Of a DNA stretch of 64,000 bases, positions 28,820 to 62,090 are shown one piece after another. The notes under the pieces are model-generated. The model saw only the letters and a list, made by a program, of their open reading frames with translations. It had not been told where the DNA came from and did not search any database. The stretch is from Mustelus asterias. Its lineage: Eukaryota. Positions within the stretch are counted from its first letter, which is position 1, and each line of letters begins with the position of its first letter. The translations under genes were made by a program, and so were the position numbers. Location of the stretch: NCBI RefSeq assembly GCF_964213995.1, contig NC_135808.1, positions 7,192,001 to 7,256,000 of the forward strand, read 5' to 3'.

Positions 28820-28941
28820 ATTTCCTATACCGGAGATGACAGTGCATGAGTACATTTGTTGCCTACCACATGTAAATCACTCTGATCAATATCCTACCAC
28901 TGAAATCAGCGGAGGTTGTTTGCAGCAGTTTCAGTCAGAAG
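28820..28941 (+). promoter_or_regulatory. Candidate promoter/non-coding exon 1 of gene A
   Basis: Non-repeat block conserved with 54160-54292, ending in the conserved donor CAGAAG|GTAATG. The leader exon has its own acceptor, so an upstream exon is required. The 5' limit is unknown. Confidence 0.6.
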
Positions 28942-29843
28942 GTAATGTTTCAACTCTATGCGCGATTGTGATGGGGCAAGCGATATAGCAGTTACTCCGA
29001 GCTACTGGGCAGCTCCATCCGCTTCTCTTGCTAAGTCCAATGCAAAGATGTCCCATTAAACCATAGCAAAGTAGGCAAGCAACCGGTTCAAACTCTCATC
29101 TGCAAGGCACCTCTGAGGCAGGAGGGTTGTGCGTTCAAATCCACATCTAGAACTTCATGGCAAGCCTGACACTCTCATGAATTACTAAAGAGTGCCGCAC
29201 TGCCAGAGGTGCCAATTTGGAATGAAAAGTTAAAAGGTGCCATTGTCAGCTTTCTCAGGAGTACATAAACGATTCTATTGAAAGGAAGGTGGGTGGGTTA
29301 GAGTAAAATGCAATGATGCAGTGGTTAGCACTGCGCCAGGGACCCGGGTTTGCTTCCCGGCTTGGGTCACTGTCTGTGCAGAGTCTGCACCTTCTCCCAG
29401 TGTCTGCATGGGTTTCCTCCGGGTGCTCCGGTTTCCTCCCACAGTCTGAAAGATGTGCAGGTTAAGTGCAGTGAGCATGCTAAATTCTCCCTCAGTATAC
29501 CTGAACAGGCGCCAGAGTGTGGCAACTAGGGGATTTTTACAGTAACTTCATTGCAGTGTTAATGTAAGCTTGCTTGTGATGAATAAATAAACTTTAGCAA
29601 TAACTGCGCACTATATTCTTCATTGTTTGACACTAAATAAATGGGACCATATATTTACATGAGTTACAAATCGAATTCCAGCCAGGCATCTTTCACTGCC
29701 ATAGTTCAGTGACCACCAGCTGAAAGGATAAATACACAGGGAAGTTTAAATGGATCACATTTTTTCTCAAACAGTTGAATGAATATCTCGCAAAAATTAT
29801 ATATACAAATTATTTTCCCTTTATTGCAGGCAGTTGTGAAGCC

Positions 29844-29886
29844 ATGTTATGGGATGGATTCATTTGGTCATTGCTGTTATTCTGGA
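29844..29886 (+). CDS. NCR3: NCR3/NKp30-like gene A, leader exon (MLWDGFIWSLLLFW, phase 1)
   Basis: Acceptor ttttccctttattgcag ends at 29829; gccATG at 29844; hydrophobic 14 aa; donor A|GTAAGT at 29887. Homologous 43-nt coding segment in gene B; splices in frame to the V exon. Confidence 0.85.
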
Positions 29887-32800
29887 GTAAGTAATCCACA
29901 ACCATGGTCTTTCGATAATTTTGAACAGATTCACATTCTGCCACCACCCCCCCCCCCCACCCCGCCCGCCCGCCCCCCCACCACCACCACACATGCACAC
30001 ACACACATACACACAGGTAACACTGGGGGCATAGTGTCACCGTAGTTAGCACTGCTGCCTCACAGCACCAGGGACCCGGGTTCGATTCCTGGCTTGGGTC
30101 ACTGTCTGTGTGCAGTTTGCACATTCTCTCCATGTCTGTGTGGGTTTCCTCCGGGTGCTCCGGTTTCCTCCCATAGTCCAAAGACGTATGGGTTGGGTGG
30201 ATTGGCCGTGCTAAATTGCCCCTTAATGTCAGGGGGACTAGCTAGGGTAAATGCACGCGGTTATGGGGATAGGACCTGAGTGGATTAGTGGTCAGTGCAG
30301 ACTCGATGGACCGAATGGACTCCTTCTGCACTGTAGAATTCTATGATTGTGACACTAATAAAAAAAATAAACTAATAATAAATAAAAATAACATTAAATT
30401 TATGTCTGCGTGCATATATTTAATCTAACATAAGACAAATACTTATGTACAAATACTTATTTGTAAAGCAGATATTTCATTATATACTTGAAAACATAAC
30501 AGACAACAACTTTTCAGGCGCCTTTGGGCTCATCAATTGCCCCAAAGCGCTTGAAAATGCGTTCATATCAACTGCCTAAAGAATGGAATCGCCAATCTCG
30601 GAGATTCTTCTGCTAACTGTGTCAATGTTAATGGTTATCCGGCGGGCCATTCAAAAGTCTAAAAGGAACCACACAAAAACAAACATTATCTTGGTATATC
30701 CCATTATCCTTCAGGAGTAGGCAAGATCCACTGACTGCATTGTGGAATACAGCGACTTGAGCGCCGAGGTCAGTTCACAAGCGATGGCAGTTGAAGTGAA
30801 TTCACTGGGCTTCAGCAGTTCTGACCCATGGGATTTCATTCTAAGATTGCTTTAAAACCTCCTCCTAACACCGCGTGGCGAAGGATCACATCCCGATAAC
30901 CATTCGCTTTCCTAAATTGGACTGACTACTTTCAGAATTTTCTACACTCATGTGAATTTCACAGATTTGGCGATATCCTCTTATCCTTGGTTCCGTGTAC
31001 TGTTCACTTTATGCTCGTCAAACCGCGCCCGGCGCACTAGTTATTAATAACAGTCTCCGATAAGTAATTCTCAAAGCAAACATACTTAACATACTAAATG
31101 TTCCGAAGCAATGAAATTGGAACTTGACGAGAAAGCGTCGTTATATGTGTTAAAATTTGTGGACGCAAAATGGGGGCCCAGAGCAGGTAAAATTGTCCAA
31201 CAAGAGGCTAGCACTGCTGCCTCACCGCGCCAGGGATCCGGGTTCAATTCCGGCCTCGGGTCACTGTCGGTGTGGAGTTTGCACATTCTCCACATGTCCG
31301 CATTTGCTTCCTCCGGGTGCTCCGGATTCCTCCCACAGTCCAAAGATGTGTAAATTAGATTGATTGGCCATGCTAAAATTGCCCCTTAGTGTCAGGGGAT
31401 TATCAGAGTAAATATGTGATTTATTTACTGTGCCACCGTGCCGCCCATAGCCTAGGGAGTAGGGCCTTGATGGGATTGTTGTAGGTGCAGGTTCGTTGGG
31501 CCGAATGGCCTCATTCTGCACTGTAGGGATTCTATGATCACCCCCTCCGCCTCCCCTCCCCAACCCCCTCCCTCCCCAGCAACGAGGGTCCAGCAACACT
31601 GAGGTTGTCCCTCTAACTTGATATCGAGGTCTGGTTTGAGGAGGTGATAAAAGTGACTTTAAAATGGGATCTGAGCCTCACTGGAAAGACCAGTATCTGT
31701 TGCCCATCTATAATTGGGTTTCAACTGAGTGGCATGCTTGGCCATATCGGGAAATCAATTACATTGATGTAGGTCTGGAGTCACAAGCAGGAACTAGGGA
31801 CGGCAGCTTTCCTTCCCCTTGGCCTCTGAGCATGAGCCTGGGTTTCTGGATTACTAAAGTTAAGTTTATTTATTAGTTAGAAGTAGGCTTACATTAACAC
31901 TGCGATGAAGTTACTGTGAAATTCCCCCAGTTGGCACACTCCAGCACATGTTCGGGTTAATGCTTCCAACCAGCATGTCTTTCAGACTGTGGGAGAAAAT
32001 TGGAGCACCTGGAGAAAACCCACGCAGACTCGGGGAAAACATGCAAACTCCAAACAGACAGTGACTAAACCAGGAATCGAATCCAGGTCCCTGGCATTGT
32101 GAGGCAGCTAACCACTGTGCCACCGTGCCACCCATAGCCTAGTGCTATTACCACTGCTCCAACATCTCGCCCCAAGGCTGTCCAGGGCTGTATTATACTA
32201 ATTCTCTCCAGCAGACCTCCTGTTCCCCCATGGTCGTTATGATCATCACAATTTTCAAGATAATTGATTTTAAATTATCATCAGTTTTAAATTAGAGGTC
32301 TAAGCTGATAAGTGACCAAACTAGCATGAAAGGTAATTGCAATTAAGATGTAATATTACATCAACTGTGGCTGGACGATTATCAACTCGGTGAATTAATC
32401 TCTTTAGTCTAGAACATAGAACATAGAACAGTACAGCACAGATCAGGCCCTTCGGCCCACGATGTTGTGCCGAGATTTATCTGAAACCAAGATCAAGCTA
32501 TCCCACTCCCTATCATGTGTGCTCCATGTGCCTATCCAATAGCCGCTTAAATGTTCCTAAAGTGCCTGACTCCACTATCACTGCAGGCAGTCCATTCCAA
32601 CCACTCTCTGCGTAAAGAACCTACCTCTGATATCCTTCCTATATCTCCCACCATGAACCCTATAGTTATGCCCCCTTGTAATAGCTCCATCCACCCGAGG
32701 AAATAATCTACCTACAACTTGCGTGTTGCAGTGCAAGGTGTACCCAACTGACTGTGCAGACTGGCATATTCAAAGCCTAGGATTATATGTGGAGGGATGG

Positions 32801-33512
32801 CCTAAAACATGGGGTGGCCATGCTTATCGTGAACTTTAGTTGAACGATATACAGGTTAGGTGGATTGGCCATGCTAAATTTCCCAACAGTGTCTTAAGGT
32901 ATGTAGGTTAGATGGATTAGCCATGGAAAATGTGTGGGGTTGCGGAGATAGGGCGGGGAAGAGGGCTGGGTAAAATACTCTGTCACAGAATTGGTGCAGG
33001 CTCGATGGGCTGAATAGCCTCCTTCTGCTCTGTAAGGATTTTATGATTCTATAACCAACACTTTAAAATAGAACTTCTTCAGTGAACTATTTTATACTGG
33101 CCATCGTTGTCTCAAGTAAAGACAGATTACAGGAGCAGGTTATTGAATTCTTTTTGTGCTTGTGGAATTATCTGAGGGTGAGAAAGGGAACTGTCAAATA
33201 GATTGGGAATCTGAATCAAAGGTAGAAAAATTTGGAATTAAGAATCCACTGATTAGAATAGAACCATTGTCCATTTCCAGAAAAATAGCATCTGGTTCAC
33301 TAATGTCTTTTAGGGAAGGAAATCTGCCATCCTTACCTGGTCTGGCCTACATGTGACTCCAGAGCCAAAGCAATGTGGTTGACTCTCAACTGCCCTCGGG
33401 CAACTGGGGATGGGCAATAAATGCTGGCCAGCCAGCGACGCCCATATCCCATAAATGAATAGGAATAGAATAGAGTGGCGTGACTACTCATGAGGACATT
33501 TTGTGTCTACAG

Positions 33513-33866
33513 GAGTTACTGGCTCTAGAGTTACAGTCAAGCAGACACCGACTTTAATCAGCGTTCCCGAAGGCGACACCTTCCACATGGATTGTATCTT
33601 CAGTGAGAATGCGACCAATTCAGGAGATGAAGCCATTGGTTCAGTCACTTGGTATAAAGAATCCAGAACCAGTACAGTCTGCAACAACTGCAGAGAATAT
33701 ATCGGACGTGTTCAGAAATCCGATGTATCTTTCTTTCACAAATTTAAAAATGCATCCATATCAATAACTGAGGTGGAACCGAAAGACACGGGAAGGTATT
33801 ACTGTGAGGTGGAGCTTGCCATTGGTGGAAAGGGGACTGGAGATGGAACAAATGTTACAGTGAAAC
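33513..33866 (+). CDS. NCR3: NCR3/NKp30-like gene A, VJ-type Ig V exon (354 nt, phase 1-1)
   Basis: Acceptor tctacag|GA, donor C|GTGAGT. Canonical V-set Cys...W...DTGRYYC, the NKp30 signature AIGSVTW, and a germline-joined J-like GxGTGxGTxVTV. Confidence 0.93.
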
Positions 33867-34072
33867 GTGAGTCTGTGTTCTTTTACATTTTATTTTGGTA
33901 TAGCAGCCTCTCGTCAAACATGATCAAATGGAAGGTCAAGGTAAGTAAACCATTAATATATTGATTGCAATTTTCCCTGTTGAATCTTACCGAAAAAAAT
34001 GTGTACACTGACCGAATCGGATGTAACGCTGGTATTAACGCATCTTCCATTTGACTCTGCTTTGAAAATATT

Positions 34073-35203
34073 GTAAGAAGTTTAACAACACCAGGTTAAA
34101 GTCCAACAGGTTTATTTGGTAGCAAAAGCCACACAAGCTTTCGGAGCTCTAAGCCCCTTCTTCAGGTGAGTGGGAATTCTGTTCACAAACAGAGCTTATA
34201 AAGACACAGACTCAATTTACATGAATAATGGTTGGAATGCGAATACTTACAACTAATCAAGTCTTTAAGAAACGGAACAATGTGAGTGGAGAGAGCATCA
34301 AGACAGGCTAAAAATATGTGTATTGTCTCCAGACAAGACAGCCAGTGAAACTCTGCAGGTCCACGCAACTGTGGGAGTTACAAATAGTGTGACATGAACC
34401 CAATATCCCGGTTGAGGCCGCCCTCATGTGTGCGGAACTTGGCTATCAGTTTCTGCTCAGCGACTCTGTGCTGTCGTGTGTCGTGAAGGCCGCCTTGGAG
34501 AACGCTTACCCGAATATCAGAGGCCGAATGCCCGTGACCGCTGAAGTGCTCCCCAACAGGAAGAGAACAGTCTTGCCTGGTGATTGTCGAGCGGTGTTCA
34601 TTCATCCGTTGTTGCAGCGTCTGCATAGTTTCCCCAATGTACCATGCCTCGGGACATCCTTTCTTGCAGCGTATCAGGTAGACAACGTTGGCCGAATTCT
34701 GCCACGGGCATTCGGCCTCTGATATTCGGGTAAGCGTTCTCCAAGGCGGCCTTCGCGACACACGACAGCGCAGAGTCGCTGAGCAGAAGCTGATAGCCAA
34801 GTTCCGCACACATGAGGACGGCCTCAACCGGGATATTGGGTTCATGTCACACTATTTGTAACTCCCACAGTTGCGTGGACCTGCAGAGCTTCACTGGCTG
34901 TCTTGTCTGGAGACAATACACATCTTTTTAGCCTGTCTTGATGCTCTCTCCACTCACATTGTTCCGTTTCTTAAAGACTTGATTAGTTGTAAGTATTCGT
35001 ATTCCAACCATTATTCATGTAAATTGAGTCTGTGTCTTTATAAGCTCTGTTTGTGAACAGAATTCCCACTCACCTGAAGAAGGGGCTTAGAGCTCCGAAA
35101 GCTTGTGTGGCTTTTGCTACCAAATAAACCTGTTGGACTTTAACCTGGTGTTGTTAAACTTCTTACTGTGTTTACCCCAGTCCAACGCCGGCATCTCCAC
35201 ATC
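34073..35203. mobile_element. Penelope-like element: GIY-YIG C-terminal fragment with inverted pseudo-LTR arrangement
   Basis: Minus-strand NVVYLIRC...WYIGETMQTLQQRMNEH (GIY-YIG); inverted arms 34073-34536 and 34703-35166. Confidence 0.9.
35071..35107 (+). ncRNA. Minimal type I hammerhead ribozyme-like motif in the Penelope pseudo-LTR (mirror copy at ~34132-34168, - strand)
   Basis: cac-CTGAAGA-a-ggggc(ttaga)gctcc-GAAA-gctt-gtg: core boxes, stem II, palindromic stem III and short stem I. Penelope-like elements are known to carry such motifs. Confidence 0.7.
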
Positions 35204-36124: not shown

Positions 36125-39100
36125 ATAGAACATAGAACATTACAACGCAGAACAGGCCCTTCGGCCCTCGATGTTGCGCCAACCAGTGAAACCAATCTAA
36201 AGCCCATCTTACCTACACTATTCCAATATCATCAATATGTTTATCCAGTGACTATTTAAATGCCCTAAATGTTGGCGAGTCCACTACTGCTGCAGGCAGG
36301 GCATTCCACGCCCTTACCACTCTCTGAGTGAAGAACCTACCTCTGACATCTGTCCTATATCTATCACCCCTCAATTTAAAGCTATGTCCCCTCGTCCTAG
36401 CTATCACCATCCGAGGAAAAAGGCTCTCACTATCCACCCGATCTAATCCTCTGATCATCTTGTATGCCTCTATTAAGTTACCTCTTAACTTTCTTCTCTC
36501 TAACGAAAACAACCTCAAGTCCCTCAGCCTTTCCTCATGAGACCTTCCCACCATACCAGGCAACATCCTAGTAAATCTCCTCTGCACCCTTTCCAATGCA
36601 TCCACATCCTTCCTATAATGCGGTGACCAGAACTGTACGCAATACTCCAAGTGCGGCCGCACCAGAGTTTTGTACAGCTGCAACATGACCTCCTGGCTCC
36701 GAAACTCAATCCCTCTACCAATAAAAGCTAATACTCCATACGCCTTCTGAACAACCCTATCAACCTGGGTGCCAACTTTCAGGGATCTATGCACATGGAC
36801 ACCGAGATCGCTCTGTTCATCCACACTACCAAGTATCTTACCATTAGCCCAGTACTCTGTAATCCTGTTACTCCTTCCAAAGTGAATCACCTCACACTTT
36901 TCTGCATTGAACTCCATTTGCCACCTCTCAGCCCAGCACTGCAGCTTATCTATGTCCATCTGTAACCTGCAACAACCTTCCGCACTGTCCACAACTCCAC
37001 TGACTTTAGTGTCATCCGTAAATTTACTAACCCATCCTTCTATGCCCTCATCCAGGTCATTTATAAAAATGACAAACAGTAGTGGCCCCAAAACAGATCC
37101 TTGCGGTACACCACTTGTAACTGAACTCCAGAATGAACATTTCCCATCAACCACCACCCTCTGTCTTCTTACAGCTAGCCAATTCCTGATCCAAACTGCT
37201 AAATCACCCTCAATCCCATGCCTTCGTATCTTCTGCAATAGCTTACCGTGGGGAACCTTATCAACCACTTTACTAAAATCCATATACACCACATCAACTG
37301 CTCTACCCTCATTCACCTCTTTGGTCACCTTCTCAATGAACTCAATAAGGTTTGTGAGGCACGACCTACCCTTCACAAAACCGTATTGACTATCCGTAAT
37401 CAAATTATTCCTTTCTAGATGATTATAAATCCTATCTCTTATAATCCATTCCAAAGCTTTGCCCACAACAGAAGTAAGGCTCACTGGTCTATAATTACCA
37501 GGGTTGTCTCTACTTCCCTTCTTGAACAAGGGGACAACATTTGCTATCCTCCAGTCTTCTGGCACTATTCCTGTAGACAATGACGACATAAAGATCAAAG
37601 CCAAAGGCTCTGCAATCTCCTCCCTAGCTTCACAGAGAATCCTGGGATAAATCCCATCCAGGCCAGGTGATTTATCTATTTTCACACTTTCCAGAATTGC
37701 TAACACCTCCTCCTTATTAACCTCAATCCCGTCTAGTCCTATAGCCTGTATCTCAGTATTTTCCTCGACAACATTGTCTTTTTCCTGCGTGAATACTGAC
37801 AAAAAATATTCATTTAGTGCCTCTCCTATCTCTTCAGGCTCCATGCACAACTTCCCACTACTGTCCTTGCCTGGCCCTAATCTTACCCTAGTCATCCTTT
37901 TATTCCTGACATACCTATAGAAAGCTTTAGAGTTTCCCTTGATCCTACCTGCCAAAGACTTCTCATTTCCCCTCCTGGCTCTTCTTAATTCTCTCTTTAG
38001 ATCCTTCCTGGCTAACATGTAACTCTCAAGCGCCCTAACTGAGCCTTCACGTCTCATCTTTACATAAGTCTCCTTCTTCCTCTTCACAAGAGATTCAACT
38101 TCTTTAGTAAACCACGGTTCCCTCACTCGACCATTTCCTCCCTGCCTGACAGGTACATACTTATCAAGGACACCCAGTAGCTGTTCCTTGAACAAGCTCC
38201 ATATTTCAATTGTGTCCATTCCCTGCAGTTTCCTTCCCCAACCTATGCATCCTAAATCTCTCCTAATCGCATCATAATTTCCTTTCCCCCAGCTATAACT
38301 CTTGCCCTTCGGTATATACCTATTCCTTTCCATCGCTAATGTAAACATAACCGAATTGTGGTCACTATCACCAAAGTGCTCCCCTACCTCCAAATCTAAC
38401 ACCTGGTCTGGTTCATTACCAAGTACCAAATCCAATGTGGCTTCGCCTCTTGTTGGCCTATCTACATACTGCGTCAGGAAACCCTCCTGCACACATTGGA
38501 CAAAAACTGACCCATCTAAAATACTCGAACTATAGCTTTTCCAGTCAATATTTGCAAAGTCCCCCATAACAACTACCCTGTTACTTTCGCTCCTATCCAG
38601 AATCATCTTTGCAATCCTTTCCTCTAGATCTCTGGAACTTTTCGGAGGCCTATAGAAAACTCCCAGCTGGGTGACCTCTCCTTTCCTGTTTCTAACTTCA
38701 GCCCATACTACCTCAGTAGACGAGTCCTCATCAAATGTCCTTTCTGCCACCGTAATACTGTCCTTGACTAACAGTGCCATACCTCCACCTCTTTTACCAC
38801 CTTCCCTGCTCTTACTGAAACATCTAATCCTGGAACCTGCAGCAACCATTCCTGTCCCTGCTCTATCCATGTCTCCGAGATGGCCACAACATCGAAGTCC
38901 CAGGTACCAACCCATACTGCAAGTTTACCCACCTTATTCCGGATGCTCCTGGCATTGAAGTATACACACTTCAAACCACCTTCCTGCCTGCCAGTACACC
39001 CCTGCGACGCTGAAACCTTATCCATGACCTCACTACTCTCAACCTCCTGTACACTGGATCTACAATTCAGGTTCCCATCCGCCTGCTGAATTAATTTAAA

Positions 39101-39200
39101 CCCTCCCGAAGAGCATTAGCAAATTTCCCACCCAGGATATTGGTACCGCTCTGGTTCAGGTGTAGACCATCCCGTTGGTAGAGGTCCTACCTACCCCAGA
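36125..39200 (-). mobile_element. Near full-length CR1 ORF2 (APE endonuclease + RT) in intron 3 of gene A
   Basis: 887-aa ORF; the N-terminal NARSIRNK...ISETW motif is in another frame (frameshift near 38.82 kb); premature stop at 36252. Confidence 0.95.
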
Positions 39201-39244
39201 ATGGAATAAATAACTTACTCGAGTGAGTTGTTTTTCTGAAACAT

Positions 39245-40095
39245 GCCATGTACACACAGATACATACACACGCACACATATGCACACACAGACAGAGACA
39301 CACGATCACACACACAGACACATATATAATCATACACGCACATATACACAATGGTGACACACGCAGATGCATACACACCAGCACACAGAAGTACACACAG
39401 ACACGACACACAACAGACACATACAGGCACATACGTATAGACACACACACATAGGCACACGGACACAGACACAATCACACACTTCAGCACACACACCGAT
39501 ACAGACACAGGCAGACATACATAGATATCTACAGACACACATACAGGAATACATAAAGGCATGCACACAACACACAGACACCTACATACACACACGTATA
39601 CACACACAGAGACATAGACACACACACAATTATATTTACATGCACATGCACATATGCATACATATAATCACACACACATGCAGACACAAACAGACAAATG
39701 CAGATACATGCAGACCCACACACAGAAATACATACTGACATGTGCACACAACACGCACACATAGACACATACACACATACGTGTATACACGCACACAATC
39801 ACACATTTATGCACAGACTTACATGCAGACATACATGCAATCACACACATACATGCACAAACATGCACACATACATACAGACCCATACACTGAAATACAT
39901 ACAGACACGCACACACAACACACATGCACAGACACACACATGTATACACACAGAGATACAGACATACAGAGAATCACTCACACATGCACACTCTCACATG
40001 TGGACACACATAGAATAACACACACTTACAGACATGGACAGACACATACAGATACATACAGACCCACACACTGAAATACATACAAAGACACATAA
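39245..40095. repeat. Degenerate (CA)n-rich low-complexity tract
   Basis: Directly visible; source of the His/Thr and Cys/Val ORFs. Confidence 0.95.
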
Positions 40096-40483: not shown

Positions 40484-40608
40484 GTCGCGTTTATTCTGAA
40501 GTGACATCGCCTTCAATTCAATGGAACGTTTATCGGCTCATAGTGGCAGCGTTGGTGCTGGTGTTGCTGACATTCATCCTTTGGATGGCACGGTGGCACA
40601 GTGGTTAG
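40484..40608 (+). CDS. NCR3: NCR3/NKp30-like gene A, stalk/TM exon ending in a SINE-derived stop (RRVYSEVTSPSIQWNVYRLIVAALVLVLLTFILWMARWHSG*)
   Basis: Strong acceptor tttctctctgtag at 40483; phase 1 matches the V exon; TM Arg (CGG 40534-40536); in-frame TAG 40606-40608 lies in the SINE head. The spliced protein is 173 aa. Confidence 0.85.
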
Positions 40609-40903
40609 CACTGCTGCCTCACAGCTCCGGCGACCGGGGTTCGCATTCCAGCCTTGGGTGACTGTCTGTAGAGTTTGCATGTTCTCCCCGTATCTGCGTG
40701 GGTTTCCTCCGGGTGCGCCGGCTTCCTGCCAGATTCCAAAGATGTGTGGGTTATGTGGATTGGCTATGCTAAATTGACCCTTCGTGTCAGGGGGATTAAA
40801 CAGGGTAAATACTTGAGATTACGGGTATAGAGCCTGGGTGGGATTGTTGTTAGTGCAGGGTCGATGGGCTGAATGGCCTTCTTTTGCACTGTAGGGATTC
40901 TAT
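40583..40903 (+). mobile_element. HE1/V-type tRNA-derived SINE inserted in the TM exon of gene A
   Basis: A/B-box head (ggcacggtggcacagtggttagc...gggttcg), central V-domain, CR1-type tail gcactgtagggattctat. Confidence 0.95.
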
Positions 40904-43900
40904 AAATTCTATTCTATTTTCAAATTTCCTCCTCACTGCTGCGGACCTCTAACTAATTATACTAAATTTAACTTGATTACTACATAGAATAAGTTACTGC
41001 AGATCTATATCTTCCCTGCAGTGTGTTGAATACTGTATATGTAAAAGAACGCCGCGGTTAATTTAGCTCACGTTGCGATGTATCTAAAGCGACAGTAAAC
41101 TAAAATGATGGATAATCAAAATGTCAGCGTTGGCTATCATGATTTTCTTTAACAAATGCAACTGAACAAGGCCATTGTTTGAACTTTGCATATTTTGAAA
41201 TCACAAATACTATGGTTTGTGCCATAGGTGTATTTTGATTACCGCAGAAACAATTAATGGAAAGACCGACATGGTCACATCTCCAGAGACATCTCCGGAT
41301 TCGATTCCCAGCTTGGGTCACTGTCTGTGCGGAGTCTGCACGTTCTCCCAGTGTCTGTGTTGATTTGCTCCGGGTGCTCGGGTTTCCTCTCACACTCCGG
41401 GTTAGGTGGATTGGCCATGTTAAATGCGCAGGGTAACTATTATAGGGCGGGTGAGTGGGCCTCGGTCGAGTGCTCTTTCACAGGGTCGGTGCAGACATGA
41501 TTGGGGAATGATTGGGATTTTGTGCGCTATGTGTTCGGCGAAAGGGGCGTGAAGAAGGCACAGGGACTGGGCAATTGGCCACCTGCGATGCTGTGTTCTA
41601 TGATTCTATGACAAAACCAAGTACTGTCGCCTCATGCTCCACGCGATGAGAGAGACCGTGACCAATCTCTCTCGCAAATAAATTTTCTTAGAAATCCATC
41701 GTTGCTTCAATTGACTTGACATAGATAGATTTGGGAAGCTTAGGGAGAAAGCAGCCAATGTTGCCGAGTCCAGGAAGAAACGTGAATCTTAAAACAAGAT
41801 ATAGCTTGCGCTTACGTAGAGCTTTCCACCGTGTTGAATATCCCAATGTGAATCACCGGAACATTATCAAGCACTATCGTGAGATATTCCAGCAACTTAA
41901 CCGACAGCTGGGATGAACTGATAGACTCTAAGGAGAATCTTAAATGAGGAATGAGAGAACGTGAGGCTGAAAGAGAAGGAAAGGTGAATGGGAAATTGTG
42001 TTATAACTAACTATGTTTCAGTTAGTTACAAGAATGAAAAAAAATGACTGCTACCCACCATTGTGCGCCACCGTTGTCACGTATTAATTATTGATTGAAT
42101 GTTTTCACTGCGTTGAATTACAGTCTGGTCATCAAAATTGCAGAAGTAACGCTTACCTAATTGTGCATCCGAGTAAACCTCAGAATGTTTCACGTGTTTA
42201 TAGCATTTTTAATCCATTTGCTCCAGGCTTTGCGGATCACAGTGTTTTTGTCACATCATATACAAGGTCTCAAGCAATGGTGAGCTGAGAAACTATATGG
42301 CCGGAATTCTCCCATCCCGCCCGCCACTGGAATTTTAGCGGGCGAGTTGCTGAGCATGTGAAACGCCATTGACGGTCGGCTGGGAATTTCTGGCTTTAAG
42401 ACCAGCGCGGCTGGAGAATTCCCTATTCAAAATGAAAGTCTATGTTAAGGAAAGAGCAGATTTTCTCCTAAAGTTTTCACTTCTATTGATCACTCCAATA
42501 TGCTATTTTTGGGCTATTACTGTTCTTCCAGCTTGAAAATACGTAATCAATTTAAAATGTCGTATAGGTCAAAGAATAAAACAGGGAATCCAAGTTGTAA
42601 ATACGGTATGTGATAAATCTCAATGAAAACCACCAGTTTGATTTGCACTGTGGTTAACTGACATTGAATGTGGCTATTTTTGAGGAAGAAAGATGCAAAG
42701 CTAAGTTTCACGATGAATATGATTGGAATAGAGGAGAACAGAAGTAAGATCGAGCGATTCGTGAACGCAAGTTTGGGATGTGGCTTTTTTTTTCATTCTT
42801 GGGACATGAGCGTCGCTGGCTGGCCAGCATTTATTGCCAATCCCGAGCCACCCTTGAGAAGGTGGTGGGGAGCCGCCTTCTTGAATCGCTGCAGTCCACG
42901 TGCTGCGGGTTGACCCACAATGCCATTAGGGAGGGAATTCCAGGATTCTTACCCAGCCATTGCGAAGGAACGGCGATATATTTCCAAGTGAGAATAGTGA
43001 GAGGTTTGGAGAGCCGAGTGTCAACTAGGCTGCAGCAGGAAATGGAGGTAGATAGAGAAATCACCCAGGCGCGGTGAATCAGCATGCTGTTAACAAATGG
43101 ACGTGTTTTTCAAATGCTTTCTAAGAAATCCGAAAAAGTTAGGATCGGGGGTGAGAGAGACTGAGGCACAACACTAGCATTATGCAAGAGCTTCAAATTG
43201 AATACTTGTATTGATGCCTGCTTGACGTTAAACCCAAATTCTATGGACGTTTCCCGTGATGCATTTAACAATGTCAAATTGGAACACATATGTGGCAATA
43301 TATTAATGCCAGGCCGTAATAGCATAAGGCGTGGGTGGAGAAGTCGGTCATTCGGCCCATCGAGTCTGCTCCGCCATTCAATGAGATCATGGCTAACCTG
43401 ATAAGATATTTCTCGACTCCACATTCTCGCTGTGTCCCCAAAGCATTCCCTTACTGATTAAAAATCCGTCCACCTCAGGCTTTAACATACTTAACGACCC
43501 AACTTCTGCAAACTTCTGCGGTAAAGAATTCTACAGATTCACTATCGAAACGAGTACTGCTTTTCGTTATTTACCCTTGAAACAGCCTTGTACCACATTT
43601 ATTAGTTTTTGTCTCGAAATGTTCAGAGTTCTGCCAACCTTTAGTTCGTTCGTTGAAATAACCTACCAGCCCCCACATATATTTCTTATCCGATTATAAC
43701 GAGAACTTTAGTCTTTATAGTCTTTAGTCCATTGCATGGGATATTGCCTGCGAGGTGTGTTCATTTGTTCCCGTATTATATGAGCGATTTTCTGCTCTAA
43801 ATATATCTCTTATTGCAGATAACCCCACTGCATGTATCTTATATGGGGACTCGAACTTTTTCTCTTGTTGCCAACTTGCCACGCTTTGTGAAAGGAGTTA

Positions 43901-45672
43901 TTGACAATTGCCGTGTTCACGCTGCCAAGGTCGAGATTCTTTTGGGAGTTTGACCTTTGTAAAGTGGGCGCAAGCTGACCCATGTTCTCGAACCTGGCAG
44001 GGCATTGTGTTAATCCTTTTTATCAGTGCATCGTCCTGTTAACCGTTTGCAAATCCAAACTGTCATTTGCTGTCCCAAAGCTGTCTGTGCGGAGTTTGTA
44101 CATTCTCCCCGTGTCTGCGTGGGTTACTTCCGGGGGCTCCGCTTTCCTCTCACCGTCCAAAGATGGGCGGGTTAGGGTGAATTGGCCATGTTAAATTGCC
44201 CCTTAGTGTCAGGGGGGCTAGCTAGGGTAAATGCATGGGGTTATGGGGATCGGGCCTGGGGGAGATTATGGTCGGTGCAGACTAGATGGCCGAATGGCTT
44301 CCTTCTGCACTGTAGGAATACTATGAATCTAACATCATGGAACAGTGAACAGTGTAATCAGTGTAATCATAATTAAATACCAATATACAGTCAAAAGAAA
44401 AATGTTTCCAGAGGGCGGCACGGTAGCACAGTGGTTAGCACTGCTACTTCACAGCTCCAGGGACCTGGGTTCGATTCCCGGCTTGGGTCAATGTCTGTGT
44501 GGAGTTTACACATTCTCCTCGTGTCTGCGTGGGTTTCCTCCGGGTGCTCCTGTTTGCTCCCACAGTCCAAAGATGTGCGGGGTATGTTGATTGGCCATGC
44601 TAAAATTGCCCCTTAGTGCCCTGAGGTGCGTAGATTAGAGGGATTAGCGGGTAAAATATGTAGGGATATGGGGGTAGGGCCTGGGTGGGATTGTGGTCGG
44701 TGCAGACTCGATGGGCCAAATGGCCTCTTTCTGCACTGTAGGGTTTCTATGATAAGGAATCGCCAGGTTCGCCATATTGCTCCGTGTAATTTCCATTACG
44801 GATTTGAATTAAAAGATACTCGGTACAAGTTAAAAGATCAACCATTGACTCGAAGTTAATAACAATAGAAGATAGTAGTGGAGCTGTTATAGACTTTTAT
44901 ACGCTGAAGCAATTGCATGATCACCTGTAGTGTGACTTAACATAACCACAATATTTGTTCAAAAGATTGAAGGGCGGAGACATGTTGGGAAACTATAATT
45001 TATGAGAAGCTGAACGTCAGTCAATCAAGCAGCCACCCTCCTGATGCGATTGTGTGCAAGACAACGAGGCCACGCGTACAGAGTAAAAACTCACAGCGAG
45101 AGGGGCGGTGTCACTCCCAGAGCAACAATGGAGAATCTCAATTGCAGACATTGTATAAATTGTAACCAGGCTTGGAGGCGGCTATCAGCATCAACAGAAG
45201 TCGCCTTGATGCTTAACACCCATTCTAATAACGATTGAGTTGGATTATTTTTTCTGACCTTCACAGTTTTAAAGTTTAAAGTTAGGATTGGACTTTAATA
45301 AATTGCTACTTGAAAGTTCTGCATATTTAAACATAATAAGTATTCTTGTCCTTGATTGCGAAGGTGTGCTGAAAGTAATGTTTGTATCAGTAATTTGATT
45401 GATTGATTCGACGCGAGAATGATTCCTTCTCACCAAGTTCAAAGCGCCATACATTAAGGTTGGACACTGGTTTCTTGTCGTTCTTTTCCGAACCAAACTT
45501 GTTATATTTCGCTGTATTTGTGACTCCTAATCAGTATTCTTCCAGTTTCATGTATTTTTTCGAAGTGCAAGTTTATTAACCAAGGTTTATAATCAATAAT
45601 TTGTTATGCGACCTCGAGATAGTCCGAGATAAGGACTATGGACGTCGGATGTAACAAGAGAAATGTAGCCCA

Positions 45673-54012: not shown

Positions 54013-54159
54013 TGACTGCGTTGAAACATCGCTGTTGCAGCTGCGCCAGGAAATGCCGCCTGGATGGGCTGCGACCATCGCAGTCAACGGCCATGATCCC
54101 GAACATGGCCTCTGACAGAAATATGTATATCAATGACTAATGATCCAAGGCCTAGCTCA

Positions 54160-54292
54160 TTTCCGATACGATAAAAATGGCAACCGGAGATGACGGTGGT
54201 CATACGTTGCCTACCAGAAGTATATCACTGATTGATCAAGACCCTCCCCTTGAGATCAGACAGAGGTTGGTTGCAGCAGTTTCACTCAGAAG
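54160..54292 (+). promoter_or_regulatory. Candidate promoter/non-coding exon 1 of gene B
   Basis: Paralogous to 28820-28941 (accggagatgac, gttgcctacca, gcagcagtttca.tcagaag|gtaatg). Confidence 0.6.
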
Positions 54293-55075
54293 GTAATGGT
54301 TCGACTTTGTAACTGATGCGCACAGCAATATAACAGTTATTCCAACTTGATGTCTCCATCTGCTTGTCTTGCTCAATCTAATGCAAAGATGTCCTATTAA
54401 ACATTAACAAAGCAGGTAAATTGATGTGACTATTTAAATTATTAACAGCTGGAAGGTACAGCCTGTATATATGGTTCTTTGGAGTTTCCTGGCGAATTCT
54501 TCTCCCTCAATCATCACTTGTAGAGAAAGGTAATTTAGTCTTGGGTACATTTCTACTCATGGGAGCTTGCTGCGGTCAAATTGGCAACCCTCGTTTCCTA
54601 CATTGCAATCCTACTTTTCCAAAGTAGTTCGCTGTACTGAATGCTCTTTGCCAAATCTAATGGTCCGGAGGGAGGATATGAAGTCGAGTTTCTCATTATT
54701 CTTTACTTCTTTGTCCGCTATAATCAAGAAGGATTTTAACTAATCCGTCCGTCCTCTCAAGATGTAACGAAAGATTATTTTCTGAAGCCGAGGCCGTGGT
54801 TAATTTCCACGAGGGTTATAACTGGACGCTACATTTCCTAGTGTGTTTAATGCTTAATAAATTAGACCAGATTCTCAATTAATTTCAAACAGGAAATCGG
54901 TTAGAATTCCTGCCAGTTAATCTCCACTGTTGCATTGCAGCGACCTCCGGCGAAAACGACAAATGCACTAAATTTAACTGCTCCACTTTTTTTTTGTTCA
55001 CAATGTTGAATGAATTGCTCTGAAAAATGTTATAAAAGAAATACTACTCATTTGTCCACAGGTAACCGCGCAGCC

Positions 55076-55118
55076 ATGCTATGCAACAGAATCGTTTGGT
55101 CATTGCTGTTGCTCCCTC
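55076..55118 (+). CDS. NCR3: NCR3/NKp30-like gene B, leader exon (MLCNRIVWSLLLLP, phase 1)
   Basis: Acceptor tttgtccacag ends at 55061; gccATG; donor C|GTAAGT; same length and phase as in gene A. Confidence 0.85.
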
Positions 55119-55364
55119 GTAAGTAATCTGCACCCGGGCTCTCTTATGTGTCTATGAATAAGCATATGTACACACACGCATACACACAGAGTTACACATC
55201 CACACGGATACTTGTTATCGAGGTTTATGCACCCATTTATACGCATATTGTATATCTACTTATATTAGATACAAACATTTAAATATTTCACGCAGAGGCA
55301 TCGATACACACATCTGTAAACATATCATCTACATTATTCAGATACGTACTTCATATAGAGGTAT

Positions 55365-55634
55365 AAATGCATATGCATGAACATATTGCACACACACACA
55401 TCCACACGCACAGATACGCACGCACACATACTCCCACATGCATGTGCACACACATACATATACACAAATGAACACGCACACATGCCAACATACACACACA
55501 CACACACACACATACACTCAGGCACACACGGACACATCCATACGCTCAAACGCACACACATAGGCACATACACCAACACACACACAGACACACACAAACA
55601 CACACACACACACACACACACATACACACACACA
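55365..55634. repeat. Degenerate (CA)n microsatellite region in gene B intron 2
   Basis: Directly visible. Confidence 0.95.
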
Positions 55635-56648
55635 GGACGTACTGGCAAATAACTGAAGCCCCTCATCCCGAGAACCATTCTCGTGAATCTTTTTCGCAAT
55701 TTCGTCAAGTCATTCAAATCATTTTTGGGATGCCGGAATGGCGTATGGGGAGAGATTGGGTCCATTCGGATCACAGAAGAGTTCAGATGGAGCTCAGACA
55801 AATGTGGGGTGATCTCATAGATACCGATAATATTCTAACAGGACGAGACAGGCAGGAAGGGATATTCCCGATGGTGGGGTGTCCAGAACCAGGGGACACT
55901 GCCTAAGGATACAGGATAAACAGTTTAGGTCTGAGATGAGGAGGAAGTTCTTCACTCAGAGAGTGGTGAGCCCGTGACTTCGCTAGCACAGAAAGCAGTT
56001 GAATGCGAAACATTGTATGTTTTCAAGAAGGAATTAGGTATAGCTCTTGAGGCTAAACGGATCAAATGATATTGAGGAGAAGCGGGAATAGGGTACTGAG
56101 TTGGATGATCAGCAATTAATATAATGAATGATGGGAAAGGCTGGAAGGGCTGAATTGCGTATTCCTGCCCCTCTTTTCTATGTTCCTATGTTTGTAAAGT
56201 GCGATGGCCAAAATATTATTTTACACAGGGTTGAAATAACCTATGTGCCCCATTAATAAATGCTGTATACTTCATTAACTCCCATTCTGCCACCTTCAAT
56301 GACTTACGTACATACACATCGGGGTGGCTCTGTTCCTACAGACTTGGACCCTTTATTTTTCTCTTGGTTCTTCGTGTTTTTTCTACCAAAACGAATCACT
56401 TCACAATTCTCTGCGTTAAATTAAACCTCCCATTTGACCTCCGGTTCCAGCAAACTGTCCATATGCCATTTCGAACTCCTCCACTATCCTCATCGCCCTT
56501 CACAATGCTTTCAAATTTTTTATGGTCCACAACTTTAGAAAATTGTGCATTGTGAATCAAGGTCATTTATACATGCAATGTCACAGGTTTCTTATTCCTT
56601 GTCGCTCTTTGGCGATTGTGCAGAGACGGAGCTGCAACTCCTCCTCGC

Positions 56649-56723
56649 AACAATGTAGCGTGGAGCGACTATTACTGAGGTTATTGCATGTTTACCGGAG
56701 TTACCGACTCTAGAGTTACAGTC
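56649..56723 (+). pseudogene. Truncated relic of an NCR3-like V exon 5' end with a dead acceptor
   Basis: tgtttaccg|gagttaccgactctagagttacagtc matches the start of the gene B V exon (tgtttacag|gagttactgactctagagttacagtc), with AG changed to CG. Homology stops after about 9 codons. Confidence 0.8.
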
Positions 56724-58379
56724 TACCAAGCAAGGATCGAGAATGATAAGGATTGTTGATCCTGTTTCCCTCTTTGCGATTAGGCGGACATTCTAATTTG
56801 TCTTTATATGCGCAAGAAGAGTCTGGCTAAAAAAAAGACAGGTAACCACTAAGACTTAATATTTTCGACTCGCTGGCTGGAGTGAAAACCTGGAGTGCGC
56901 TTGACCTCTTGCCGAAAAAGTGCCCGATTTTCCTACAATTTGGATTCTAATTCATCACCAGTTTTTTTATACGCGCCTAGTTTGTAACGTAGCCCTCCCA
57001 GCTCGTGTAAGATAGCATTTGCATTAAAGCGTAATATTCACGCTTCTGACCTGCTTTCGGCAACACAGTGGAGCCAATGACATACTTGCAAGTAGAGACT
57101 TCAATTGTTCTGCAGCAGCTGCCGTCAGCGCCAGTTAAAACGCATTGTAGTCAATTCCCATTAAATAAAGGGCAGCTTCAGTCTCATTGCTCCTCTTTAT
57201 TTGTGGTTTAGACTGAGGGGTGGAAAGAAAAGTCTCAGACAGCAGACTCTAAGATAGATTGCACATCAGAAATAAAGCTGGAAAATATCACGCGGAATTC
57301 AGGCATTACTCAGTGTACACTCAGGTCGGGCAATGGCTGGCGAGAAACAGGGAGACAGAGCGAGAGACTCTCCGCCCTGTCTCCCTGTGTGGTGGCGCGT
57401 TGTTTGCCAGCGGCAGGATTCACTGGTGCCACCGCTGTCAATGGGGAGGCGATGGCCTAGTGGTATTTTCGCTAGACTATTAATCCAGAAACTCAGCTAA
57501 TGTTCTGGGGACCCGTGTCCGAATCCCACCATGGCGGCTGGTGGAATTTGAATGCAACACAAAATACCTGGAATTAAAAATCTATTGATGACTATGAAAC
57601 CATTGTCGATTGTCGGAAAACCCCATCTGGTTCACCAATGTCCTTTAGGAAAGCAAATCTGCCGTTCTTACCTGGTCTGCAGTTCATATGACTTCAGAGC
57701 CATAGCAATGCAGTTGACTCTCAACTACCCTTGGGCAACTAGGGGTGGACAATAAATGCGGGTCCAGCAAGCCATGCCCATGTTCCATGAACGAATGAAA
57801 AAATATCCCATTGACGTTACCCCATGCCAGCAAGAAACCGGCGGGAGAATCCCGCCAGTGTGAATGGCAAAAGAATGGCGGCCAGGATCTTTTAGGCTTA
57901 AGTGTTAATTTTACTTATTAGTTTCAAAGTAGTCTTACATTGACACTGCAATGAAGTCATTGTGAAAAGCCCTCAGTCGCCACACTCCGACGCCTGTTCG
58001 GGTACACTGAGGGAGAATTCAGCATTGCCAATGCACCCTAACCAGCACATCTTTCGGACTGTGGGAGGAAACCGGAGCACCTGGAGGAAACCCACGCAGA
58101 CACAGGGAGAAGGTGCAGACTCCGCACAGACAGTGACCCAAGCCGGGAATCGAACCCGGGTCCCTAGCACTGTGAGGCAGCAGTGCTAACCACTGTGTCA
58201 CCATCCCATAAATCGATGACCCTTCTTCAGAAAACTGAAACGTTAAAATGACCCGTTGTGCAACTGAATTGCTTGTTGCTGTTAGCTGTGATATCCATTT
58301 CAGAGCCCAATGTTTCTGTAACTCAAAACCAACAATGTCGAGTGGCCTGACTGTTAATGAGGACATTTTATGTTTACAG

Positions 58380-58733
58380 GAGTTACTGACTCTAGAGTTA
58401 CAGTCAAGCAAACACCGAACTCTGTCAGTGTTAAACAAGGCGACACCTTCCATCTGTATTGTAGCTTCAGTGAGAATGCGACCGATTCAAGAAACGAAGC
58501 CATTGGTTCAATCACTTGGTATAAAGATTCCCGAACCTGTAAAGTCTGCAACAACTGCGGAGAATATATCGGACGTGTTCAGAATTCTGATGTATCTTCC
58601 TTCCGCAAATACAGAAACGCATCCATATCAATAACCGATGTGAACCTGAACGACACAGGGAAGTATTACTGTGAGGTGGAGCTTCTGATCGGCGGAAAGG
58701 GGACCGGAGAAGGAATAGATGTCACAGTAAATA
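58380..58733 (+). CDS. NCR3: NCR3/NKp30-like gene B, VJ-type Ig V exon (354 nt, phase 1-1)
   Basis: Acceptor tttacag|GA, donor A|GTGAGT; AIGSITW, DTGKYYC, GKGTGEG. 32 of 118 aa differ from gene A (manual count). Confidence 0.93.
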
Positions 58734-61700
58734 GTGAGTTTGTGTTGCACGTGTAACCGCACGTTCTTTCCAAATAAACACGTAAATGGGAATTAGGGAT
58801 AATTAATCCTCCCGCACATTGAAAGTCTGCCACGCTGGGTCCTGCCCACACAAATTGTACGCTTACGAGATCGGATGCAACCCTCAGGGTTTCACTCTGT
58901 CCGAGTTTACTATGCTTCTACAATAGTGGAGGAGATTTCTGGGCCAGGTATAAAGCCGGCAGTCACAGCAGCATAGAATGGTTTCAGCTCCCGGTGTCTG
59001 TGCAGGCTCGTTGTGCAAGCTCACTTCTGGAGCAACACAATGTGCCCCAATCCCTGGCACTTTTCTGAAACCGTATCACATTCTATTTTGAACGTTAGAA
59101 CCTTATTTAATTCTCTTTTAAAACTCAGAATTAGCTGCCTCCAACACACTCTGAACCAGTGGACCCCAGATCCTAACCACTCAGTGCGTGAAATGAATGC
59201 TTTATTTCCCTCATGCCCTTGTTGGCTCGTTGGCGGATCACCTGAAATCCATCTCATCTCCTTCTCGACACTATCATAATAAGGAGCAGTTTCACTCCAA
59301 CTAGTCTGTCCAGATCCTCGTGATTGTGTACGCCTCTATGATATCTCTTTTTAACCTCTCTCCTTCGAGGAGAAACAAGCCGAGAGGGTTCTCCAATCTG
59401 TCCACTTACTGAAGTCTCTCAAACCTGGAAATATTTTTGTAAATCGTTTCTGCATACTCTGCAAAGCCTTAACATCGTTATGGAAAGTTTGGCACCCAGA
59501 ATTGGGAACAATGCCCCAGTTGAGGCCGAACTGGCGTTTTTTTTTAAATCGCCATAGCTTCCTTACTTCTGCATTCAATGCCTCCGTTTAAAAAGCCTTG
59601 AATGCTGTATGCCTTGCGAATCACTTTCTCAACTCGCCCTGGTAATTCCATCGATTTCTGCACATATGCCCTCATAGGGGATTTTCACTTCATTGCAGTG
59701 TTAATGTAAGCCTACTTGTGACACTAATATTTTTTAAAAATTCATTCGTGGGACATGGGCATCGCTGACTAGGCCAGCATTTATTGCCCATCCCTAGTTG
59801 CCATTGAGAAGGTGGTGGTGAGCAGCCTTCTTGAATCGCTGCAGTCCATGACAGCGGACTGCAGTCCATGACATTAACTTAACTTTAACTCACATATTTC
59901 CTGTCCCTCCATGTGTCCCGCCCTCCTGACAATTCAGCGATGCATCTCAACTGTCCCTGGGGAACTTTCAACTTAAAGTGAGTTGGCCTATCGAATACTG
60001 CCCTTTACAATTTTTTTGCTACCATATCCAGAAACTTCATTATCTCATCTTTAGTTCCGACTTTGGCATCATTGTCTTCCTTATTAATAACACATACAAA
60101 ACATTAATTTGTTCCTCAGCCATTCCTTATACCTCCATGCATAGATCACGTCTTTAGTCCTTAATCGCCCCGACCCTTGCCCTACTCACCAGTTTCTATT
60201 AAAGTGCTTGTAGACTTTTGGATTCCTTCATGTTAGCTGCCAATCACTCCTTATGGTTTCCCTTCGCCTCTTCGATTTCCTTTTTTCTCTCTCTTTCTTC
60301 CTATTTTCAGTCTGCTTCTTATTTGTATTGATACTAAATTAAGAACAGACAGTCAACCATAATTTATTCCCTACCTCATCATGCAGCGAGTGCTAATATT
60401 GTTTGTCCTGATTGTTTCCCTTGTGGGATTTTATTTCTATTCATTCGTCGGACATGGGCATCACTGCCTGGTCAGCATTTAATGCCCATCCCAAGTTACC
60501 CTTGGGAAGGTGATGGTGAACTTCCTTTTTGAAACGATGATACAACGGAATGGCTTGCTAGGCCATTTCAGAGGGAAGTTGAGAGTCAACCACATTGCTG
60601 TGGCACTGGAGTCACATGTTGGCCAGAACAGGCAAGGACGGCAGATTTCCTTCCCTAAAGAATATTACTGAACCAGATGGGGTTTTCCAACAATCCACAA
60701 TGGTTTCATTGTCATCAGTACATTCTTAATTGCTTATATATTTTTTATTGAATTCAAATTCCACCACCTGCATGGTGTGATTCGAACCCTCCCCAGAACA
60801 TTAACTGAGTTTCAGATGAATAGTCATGTAGGTAGGCATAGGTATTAAAGCTATAAGTTCATGTTACATTCTGCAAAAATACCCAGCTGCTGTTACATAA
60901 ACACGAACAGAGCGAAATAGGAGCAGCAATTGGTTATCATTGGATTGTGGCTCCAACGTCACATCCCGCCTGCCTACCATGACTCTGATTCCCTTGTTAA
61001 CCACGACCACATTACAGTGGAATGGGTGAAGCTATACGAACTTCATTTCTAGAATAATCCTAATGTAAAAAAAGTGACGGAAAAGTAAACTCGACTTGGC
61101 GATCCTTTCTGCATTATTTGTTGTGACGTGACGACAGTGTGACAATAGTTGCCACAAGGGAGTCATCCTTCCAAGAATTGGAATGAGACAAGTCAGAATA
61201 GAAAGGAGGATTCTAGTCAGGTGGGGATTCACCAGACCATTCTCTTTCTACATGTCTGATATCAAGAAGCTGTATTGGCGAAATAGGCAAACAAAATATT
61301 GAAACACACTTTCCTCTCCACCAGCAGAAATAATAACATGGCAGTAAGAACATAGATTGTCACAGCCAGCTGCTGAGTCAGAACTCGAGATATCCTCAGG
61401 GATGTCAAAATACAGCAATAAAAATTCAGGCTCCAGCTCATGGTAAAGAAATAATTTATTTGTATGCCAAACAAATTCGAGAGAGGGGTGTGGGGGCGGT
61501 TGGGGGGGGGGGGCGTGGGGGTGGAGGAGGATGGGGTGGGGAGAGAGAGAGAGAGCTGTGCAGAACATTGTACAATTGCTCACTTCACCATCCCCCTACA
61601 ATCAACCAAACGATCTCCGAGGAAATCTTGTATTCACCGAACTGGCACATTCTACTGGCTTTATCTGCTCACCATCTCTCTGCACCAATGCTCTTGACTC

Positions 61701-61952
61701 TCACCCTAAGTTGCTTTGCTTTCAACTAAAATGTACGACCAGCAATGGCAATCAGCCAAACACAAATGGGGATGGAGGCTGACACATTATTTTGACTTTT
61801 CTGCTCATTAGCTTGGGGCTCTGTGCATCGAGGTGCTGAAACTTACCTGCGGTTTCTCAACTGAAGCACGAAGCCCAGAATAGTTCCCCACATCGAAAAC
61901 ACAGTAGCAGATGGAAAGAAAAGCATTTTTTACTGTTCTTTTCTCTCTAAAG

Positions 61953-62090
61953 GTCATGTTGATTCTGAAGTGACAACGCCTCCAAGCCAATGGAACACAT
62001 ATCTGCTTATTATCTCAGTGCTGGCCTTTGTGGTACTCGCTCTCATCCTAACTAAACTAATTTTTATTCTGCAATGCTGTGGACCACCAG
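61953..62090 (+). CDS. NCR3: NCR3/NKp30-like gene B, stalk/TM exon (SHVDSEVTTPPSQWNTYLLIISVLAFVVLALILTKLIFILQCCGPP, phase 1-1); gene continues beyond the window
   Basis: Acceptor ttttctctctaaag, donor CAG|GTAATT, no stop; homologous to the gene A TM exon but with Leu (CTG 62003-62005) in place of Arg. Confidence 0.85.

Follow-up and report, generated by a model that had tools for sequence, protein, structure and literature searches.

INTRODUCTION

NKp30 (NCR3) is described in part of PMC6514059 as a receptor with one V domain whose transmembrane (TM) arginine pairs with CD3zeta or FcRgamma. For cartilaginous fish, a passage of PMC12227049 presents shark NCR3 as a non-rearranging VJ gene linked to the major histocompatibility complex (MHC) and mentions the deposition of nurse shark NCR3 genes. 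In the KIR and Ly49 families, according to a section of PMC2213150, mutation turns inhibitory receptors into activating ones, and the ectodomains of paired receptors are called 'nearly identical' in a passage of PMC12310515. Here, we analysed a stretch of 64,000 nucleotides of the Mustelus asterias contig NC_135808.1, free of N and hereafter called the window, in which two NKp30-like genes, A and B, lie in tandem. We find that a mobile element-like repeat has been inserted into the TM exon of gene A and provides the end of its coding sequence. We tentatively propose, at somewhat less than an even chance, that A is a derived, tail-less receptor of activating type while B has a long-tail design, the two having originated by tandem duplication.

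RESULTS

Two tandem NKp30-like genes

Searches with each exon of A and B taken singly gave a common layout for the two genes, consisting of an exon in the 5' untranslated region (UTR), a leader exon, a single V exon and a stalk/TM exon (Table 1), with exon phases that are compatible throughout (phase 1 for the leader and for either end of the V exon). Both genes are on the + strand and collinear, with 24,867 bases between their V exons. The two V domains are identical at 85 of 116 residues (73%) with 0 gaps (E 2e-63), and the V exons are 85% identical at the DNA level. Each gene encodes a single V-set domain in one exon of the VJ type, which was matched by the Pfam V-set model with an E-value of 1.1e-12 for A and 5.3e-13 for B. 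When solved structures were searched, the four top matches of either V domain were all NKp30 (best E 5.1e-10 for A and 1e-10 for B), followed by a T-cell receptor alpha chain at 7e-7 for A and by CEACAM1 at 5e-7 for B. Both domains contain an AIGS(V/I)TWYK stretch and a J-like GKGTG(D/E)G..VTV strand (J-like motifs GKGTGDGTNVTV and GKGTGEGIDVTV), and the glycine and valine of the J-like motif are invariant across a 10-sequence alignment. By these sequence matches, A and B belong to the elasmobranch NCR3-like (NKp30-like) family, as tandem paralogues. An earlier first-pass annotation of this DNA had reported two collinear, NKp30-like paralogues about 25 kb apart with V-domain identity of about 73%, and our results bear out this description in full. 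Apart from A and B, the window contains repeats only, and this is what it offers with respect to MHC linkage.

A SINE-like repeat supplies the end of gene A

The stalk/TM exons of both genes start behind good acceptors. The TM peptide of gene A reads ...WNVYRLIVAALVLVLLTFILWMARWHSG and then a stop (..SPSIQWNVYRLIVAALVLVLLTFILWMARWHSG and stop in the second form in which we give it), while that of gene B reads ...WNTYLLIISVLAFVVLALILTKLIFILQCCGPPG and then gtaatt (or, in the second form, ..TPPSQWNTYLLIISVLAFVVLALILTKLIFILQCCGPP and then G/gtaatt). At the homologous place in the two TM segments A has the codons tat CGG ctc, with arginine, and B has tat CTG ctt, with leucine. These peptides and their one-nucleotide difference read as they had been quoted in the first-pass annotation, and the donor it had called open in gene B is present as CAG/GTAATT at the end of the TM exon. 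The native TM part of gene A aligns without gaps to B 61953-62049. Beyond it, at the membrane/cytoplasm boundary, an interspersed repeat of ~330 bases lies inside the gene A exon; it is absent from B, and another 26 copies with the same two ends lie elsewhere in the window. The insertion was seen by local alignment, whereas MAFFT alignment of the TM exon regions failed to show it as a single gap. Importantly, the last eight residues of gene A, WMARWHSG, and its stop codon TAG (40606-40608) derive from the repeat.

Past the repeat the old exon resumes, since A 40909-40998 aligns to B 62052-62137, with ..FKFPPHCCGPL in A facing ..KLIFILQCCGPP in B, and this exon remnant carries a 5-base indel. 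Where B has its CAG/GTAATT donor, A has CTA/ACTAAT, with no GT, so that the donor is lost; the B donor scored 4.62, the top value among the seven donors that were scored. Thus, the short tail of gene A is not native but is due to the insertion of a SINE-like (short interspersed nuclear element-like) repeat together with the loss of the old donor. We use the label SINE only because of the size, copy number and shared ends of the repeat; neither a tRNA scan nor an Rfam scan of the inserted copy gave a match, and it may be a tRNA-derived element. Poly(A) hexamers follow the gene A stop at 40795, within the repeat, and at 41677. At 40795 the gene A copy has ATTAAA where the local consensus has GATTAGC-A, which makes it a possible hexamer 190 bases past the stop.

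Long-tail ancestry of gene A and design of gene B

A library protein search with the V domain of gene B returned 248 hits at E<=1e-3, 50 at <=1e-10 and 6 at <=1e-30. The nearest single-domain protein is P0002 of Heterodontus francisci (280 aa, 63% identity), named 'natural cytotoxicity triggering receptor 3-like', and the second nearest is P0004 of Chiloscyllium plagiosum (294 aa, 58% identity). A length-limited homologue search with the ORF of gene A found nothing, as the limit excludes relatives of 280-294 aa, and one with P0002 gave back P0002 alone. P0002 and P0004 share leader, V domain and stalk with A and B and have an uncharged TM segment and a juxtamembrane lysine, with a CCGP end in P0002, and their tails of more than 110 residues end in TVYAAV (P0002) or IVYATV (P0004), sequences that fit the patterns of the immunoreceptor tyrosine-based switch motif (ITSM) and inhibitory motif (ITIM). 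When P0002 and P0004 were compared with the window by tblastn, all A and B exons were recovered plus one extra exon, located 4 kb 3' of the gene A TM exon and reading ETIIYEKLNVSQSSSHPPDAIVC...NNGESQLQT. It matches residues 195-246 of P0002 (E 1e-4) and, in the same frame, residues 207-240 of P0004 (E 0.004), and it has an ITIM-like IIYEKL at the position of TIYAKL in P0004. Its frame is open for 64 codons, from 44971 to a stop at 45163-45165. Neither a terminal VYAxV exon nor a DKRTGTQVV-type exon was found 3' of gene A by tblastn and motif patterns in the window. The tail relic and the exon remnant beyond the repeat together indicate that A was once long-tailed and that the repeat cut the tail at the membrane edge; gene A is thus the descendant of a long-tail, ITIM-type gene. 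The short tail recorded for gene A by the first-pass annotation therefore exists, at five or six residues, but it is repeat-derived and sits on what was formerly an ITIM-type gene.

Gene B, in turn, seems to keep the long-tail design, with its tail exons predicted to lie beyond the window. Its TM segment carries no charge before the juxtamembrane lysine, and a CC motif and a strong onward donor are present. This late lysine is conserved in P0002 and P0004, with polar residues following it in P0004, and we read it as a probable cytoplasmic stop-transfer residue and not as an adaptor dock.

The TM arginine of gene A and a family-wide split

Since leucine occupies the place of the gene A arginine in B, P0002 and P0004, the arginine is derived on the gene A lineage. 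Of 153 stored proteins, 54 relatives were surveyed, namely those with a length of 140-330 aa and a TM-like window. A tyrosine motif in the tail, with no lysine or arginine (K/R) in the first 14 TM residues, was present in 22 of them; another 22 had a TM K/R and no tyrosine motif, the tail being of 40 residues or less in 15 of these. Neither feature was found in 10/54, and the combination of TM charge with tyrosine motif in 0/54. In the 22 charged-TM relatives, 13-26 uncharged residues (median 18) follow the K/R, and 18 follow it in gene A. Both forms occur among elasmobranchs: the nurse shark NCR3 QTT61904.1 (P0050, 170 aa, curated), which is among the hits at 36% identity, has a TM lysine and no tail, Hemitrygon akajei has both a short form with lysine in the TM (P0010) and an ITIM form (P0036), and an ITIM form of Carcharodon (P0030) is named NCR3-like. 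The contrast in predicted architecture between A and B is real and in line with this family-wide split between charged TM segments and tyrosine-containing tails. At the family level, a paired system built on the NKp30 scaffold is no new idea.

Age of the insertion and proposed retention of gene A

A repeat consensus was built from 12 local copies with one copy left out. The gene A repeat differs from it at 47 of 329 places (14.3%) or, outside CpG, at 40 of 301 (13.3%; Jukes-Cantor distance 0.146), and the divergence of the 12 consensus copies ranges from 0.066 to 0.174. Between A and B, the synonymous divergence (Ks) of the V exon is 0.31, half of which is 0.155, and seven non-coding flank alignments are mostly 69-74% identical (range 69-88%). 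With the repeat at 0.146 and half Ks at 0.155, the insertion appears to be only slightly younger than the duplication. Even so, gene A has kept its ATG, the open frames of its three coding exons and the full set of eight splice nucleotides. In a neutral simulation, which considered substitutions only, such intactness had a probability of 0.014, 0.048 and 0.20 for K values of 0.146, 0.10 and 0.05, respectively. The A-B alignment has 0 gap columns in the 354 bases of the V exon and 0 in the 97 of the native TM part, whereas the seven non-coding flanks have 65 per 811 aligned bases. In the A-B comparison, the V exon has a ratio of nonsynonymous to synonymous divergence (Ka/Ks) of 0.47 and the stalk/TM part one of 0.37, and polarising the changes with P0002 and P0004 as outgroups assigned 12 to A and 8 to B and left 13 unplaceable. 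Intactness of the ATG, frames and splice sites despite the old repeat argues for selective retention of gene A after the insertion, as a putative tail-less receptor.

Exon coordinates, 5' exons and surrounding repeats

The features of the two genes are collected in Table 1. The leaders were located by a signal-peptide scan that required a phase-1 donor downstream, which returned one related pair. Each leader exon lies between an acceptor and a gtaagt donor and has its start at gccATG; the two are 82% identical at the DNA level and also match the leaders of P0002 and P0004. Upstream of them, the block 28829-29075 of A is 76% identical to 54183-54416 of B and has an identical donor, AAG/GTAATG; the locus as first annotated begins at this non-coding first exon of gene A. 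We considered the ATG at 28835 as the start of gene A and rejected it: it has no hydrophobic stretch and the B frame stops after 13 codons, so the exon was taken as 5'UTR. In the B leader-to-V intron, an isolated 57-base copy of the V-exon start, 86% identical to B, lies at 56667-56723 and reads CMFTGVTDSRVTVYQ.

Table 1. Positions in the window of the exons, exon remnants and inserted repeat of genes A and B
Feature	Positions	Strand	Evidence
Gene A, non-coding first exon, 3' part	28829..28941	+	Donor AAG/GTAATG; block conserved in B
Gene A, leader exon MLWDGFIWSLLLFW, phase 1	29830..29886	+	Acceptor ttgcag, donor gtaagt
Gene A, V exon, VJ-type V-set	33513..33866	+	Pfam V-set, NKp30 structure match, splice sites
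Gene A, stalk/TM exon, native part	40484..40582	+	Acceptor ctctctgtag; Arg codon CGG at 40534-40536
SINE-like repeat in gene A TM exon (approximate limits)	40583..40912	+	26 other window copies share ends; absent from B
Gene A, remnant of old TM exon (..FKFPPHCCGPL)	40913..40951	+	Local alignment to B; donor lost
Gene A, relic cytoplasmic-tail exon (ETIIYEKLNV...NNGESQLQT)	44989..45150	+	tblastn with two homologue tails
Gene B, non-coding first exon, 3' part	54183..54292	+	Match to A block, same donor
Gene B, leader exon MLCNRIVWSLLLLP, phase 1	55062..55118	+	Signal-peptide scan, match to A leader
Gene B, V exon	58380..58733	+	Pfam V-set, NKp30 best structure, splice sites
Gene B, stalk/TM exon, end ..QCCGPP + G/gtaatt	61953..62090	+	66% identical to P0002 residues 134-177, E 5e-13

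Several other elements surround these exons. The gene A V-to-TM intron holds an 887-aa reverse transcriptase open reading frame (ORF) of the long interspersed nuclear element type at 36252-38915 on the - strand, and reverse transcriptase fragments also occupy much of 1-28 kb and 47-50 kb. The same intron contains inverted arms at 34072-34521 and 34718-35163, both 77% identical to the intergenic segment 51704-52144, and an ORF at 34378-34845 (- strand) that resembles a GIY-YIG nuclease and may belong to a Penelope-type element. TG/CA-rich low-complexity tracts at 39187-40074, just 5' of the A TM exon, and at 55334-55801, after the B leader, can be read through in many frames, giving runs of Cys/Val or His/Thr. 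Finally, a proline-rich tandem repeat of PPNQRSIL and PPTRDPSS units at 11648-12363 is open in all six frames.

DISCUSSION

The history that we tentatively favour runs as follows. Soon after the tandem duplication, a SINE-like repeat would have landed at the cytoplasmic edge of the gene A TM segment, so that five or six residues encoded by the repeat, followed by a stop, took the place of the entire tail, and in the same lineage the first TM residue would have changed from leucine to arginine. Gene B would have retained the ancestral design, with tail exons outside the window and, by analogy with its nearest relatives, a tail with ITIM/ITSM-like tyrosines. From the intact coding sequence we infer that gene A would still be made as a tail-less membrane receptor under selection and, more weakly, that its arginine would dock an adaptor carrying the immunoreceptor tyrosine-based activation motif, so that A would activate while B would inhibit. 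A more specific form of this proposal, in which gene A would be a working activating receptor made from an ITIM-type NKp30-like gene via exonisation of a mobile element, we hold to be doubtful. In that form, the repeat would supply a stop-transfer arginine, a five-residue tail, a stop and possibly a poly(A) hexamer, the adaptor dock would then come from one leucine-to-arginine change, and the abandoned ITIM exon would still be readable 4 kb downstream.

A number of observations weigh against our favoured history. The age of the repeat rests on 12 local copies, and a divergent source copy would make the repeat look older than it is; should K be 0.05, gene A could be intact by chance with a probability of 0.20, and the Ka/Ks of 0.47 is an average over the A and B lineages. 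A search of sequencing runs for the gene A V exon gave four holders, two of which contain every sampled word and probably represent source DNA; a small run with 0.59 of the V-exon words is RNA only by guess and may be DNA, and we regard it as a lead and not as evidence. A rival view is that gene A is a pseudogene, in which the repeat destroyed the TM exon, the donor and the tail decayed, and the arginine is one of many unconstrained changes. The repeat does lie within a coding exon and brings an early stop, the donor is lost, the exon remnant has its 5-base indel, tblastn and motif patterns in the window found neither a terminal tail exon nor the small exon expected before the relic, the guessed run is the only RNA lead for gene A, and activating receptors are described as short-lived in a part of PMC2213150. 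We nevertheless consider a pseudogene unlikely, given that gene A has an undamaged ATG, three open coding exons and eight preserved splice nucleotides despite a repeat with 13% divergence (P 0.014), that the V exon is free of indels with its Ka/Ks of 0.47, and that A has changed no more than B (12 versus 8). The long-tail design of gene B also has a point against it, in that tblastn and motif patterns detected no tail exon in the remaining 1.9 kb of the window (62091-64000).

Other observations concern the arginine and the proposed pairing. The 22 charged relatives have at least 3 hydrophobic residues before the K/R, whereas gene A has IQWNVY, which places its arginine at the outer edge, and a V-domain identity of 73% is low for a pair with the same ligand. 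The arginine may sit at the interface, and gene A could then be expressed as a tail-less receptor that does not signal through adaptors and acts as decoy, ligand sink or partner chain, with no activating/inhibitory pair at all. This we judge improbable: while the position of the arginine at the extreme edge of the hydrophobic stretch, the just 73% identical V domains and the 10/54 relatives with neither charge nor motif agree with it, charge and tyrosine motif are mutually exclusive among the relatives (22/22/0), and the arginine is derived, its distance from the cytoplasmic end being typical of the family. It could also be argued that gene A still yields a long-tail ITIM isoform through a cryptic donor in the repeat upstream of the stop, as two phase-1 GT sites, at 40601 and 40604, precede the stop and the relic exon has kept IIYEKL and a frame open for 64 codons. 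We regard such an isoform as highly improbable, because the two sites score -3.78 and 0.04 compared with 2.0-4.6 for the seven real donors, no AG offers an in-frame phase-1 entry to the relic exon, and the searches for the small exon before the relic and for the terminal exon were negative. The activating/inhibitory pair suggested by the first-pass annotation stands in part. Its support is the basic TM residue of A without a tail and the putative long-tail design of B, whose nearest full-length relatives have ITIM/ITSM-like motifs; what does not fit is that the ectodomains are only 73% identical, unlike the near-identical ones of classic pairs.

Comparison with mammalian NKp30 (NCR3) reveals a single V-type immunoglobulin domain with a J-like GxGTxxxV strand in A and B, and an arginine that lies 18 residues before the cytoplasmic end in A, 21 in P0093, P0110 and P0150 and 26 in P0131, NKp30-type TM sequences of which only P0093 and P0110 are named mammalian NCR3 by look-up. 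However, A and B have little identity to human NKp30, with a bit score of about 43-45, in mammals a single gene with native short tails is present whereas here there are two genes and the A tail is repeat-derived, and gene B lacks a TM charge before its juxtamembrane lysine. With the elasmobranch NCR3-like family, A and B have in common the leader, V, stalk, TM and CCGP end of P0002/P0004, and that family likewise includes short forms with lysine in the TM (P0050, P0010) and long ITIM forms (P0030, P0036). On the other hand, the nearest proteins among the matches listed have 58-63% identity to A and B, and none of the relatives listed for this subtype has arginine at the place of gene A's. We know of no NCR3-like relative that ends in a repeat. 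Reportedly, Kinlein et al. 2021 describe nurse shark NCR3 genes in eight subtypes. Our literature search found no ITIM-type NKp30 in cartilaginous fish, but Kinlein et al. 2021 and Flajnik et al. 2012 were outside it, so we make no claim that such a form is unpublished.

As in the KIR/Ly49 rule, an inhibitory-type ancestor would have gained a basic TM residue and lost its ITIM tail; gene A displays both of these steps and retains an ITIM relic downstream. The differences are that the tail was lost by insertion of a mobile element, that the family is NKp30-like and that the ectodomains have diverged to 73%. Among KIR/LILR/PIR/SIRP-type pairs, gene A would correspond by its sequence to the partner that has a basic residue in the TM and lacks a signalling tail, though the A and B ectodomains are not nearly identical.

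If gene A is dead, the locus records an ordinary birth-and-death episode within a large receptor cluster. The lost donor and the relic of the ITIM exon show the direction of change without a tree. If the exonisation proposal were true, the locus would offer a datable inhibitory-to-activating switch with its relics preserved, in a cartilaginous fish. If A is expressed, the inhibitory-first rule of primate KIR and rodent Ly49 would extend to the NKp30 scaffold and to the base of the jawed vertebrates, with the tail removed in one step by a mobile element; this route from inhibitory type to activating type would be the most interesting point of the locus.

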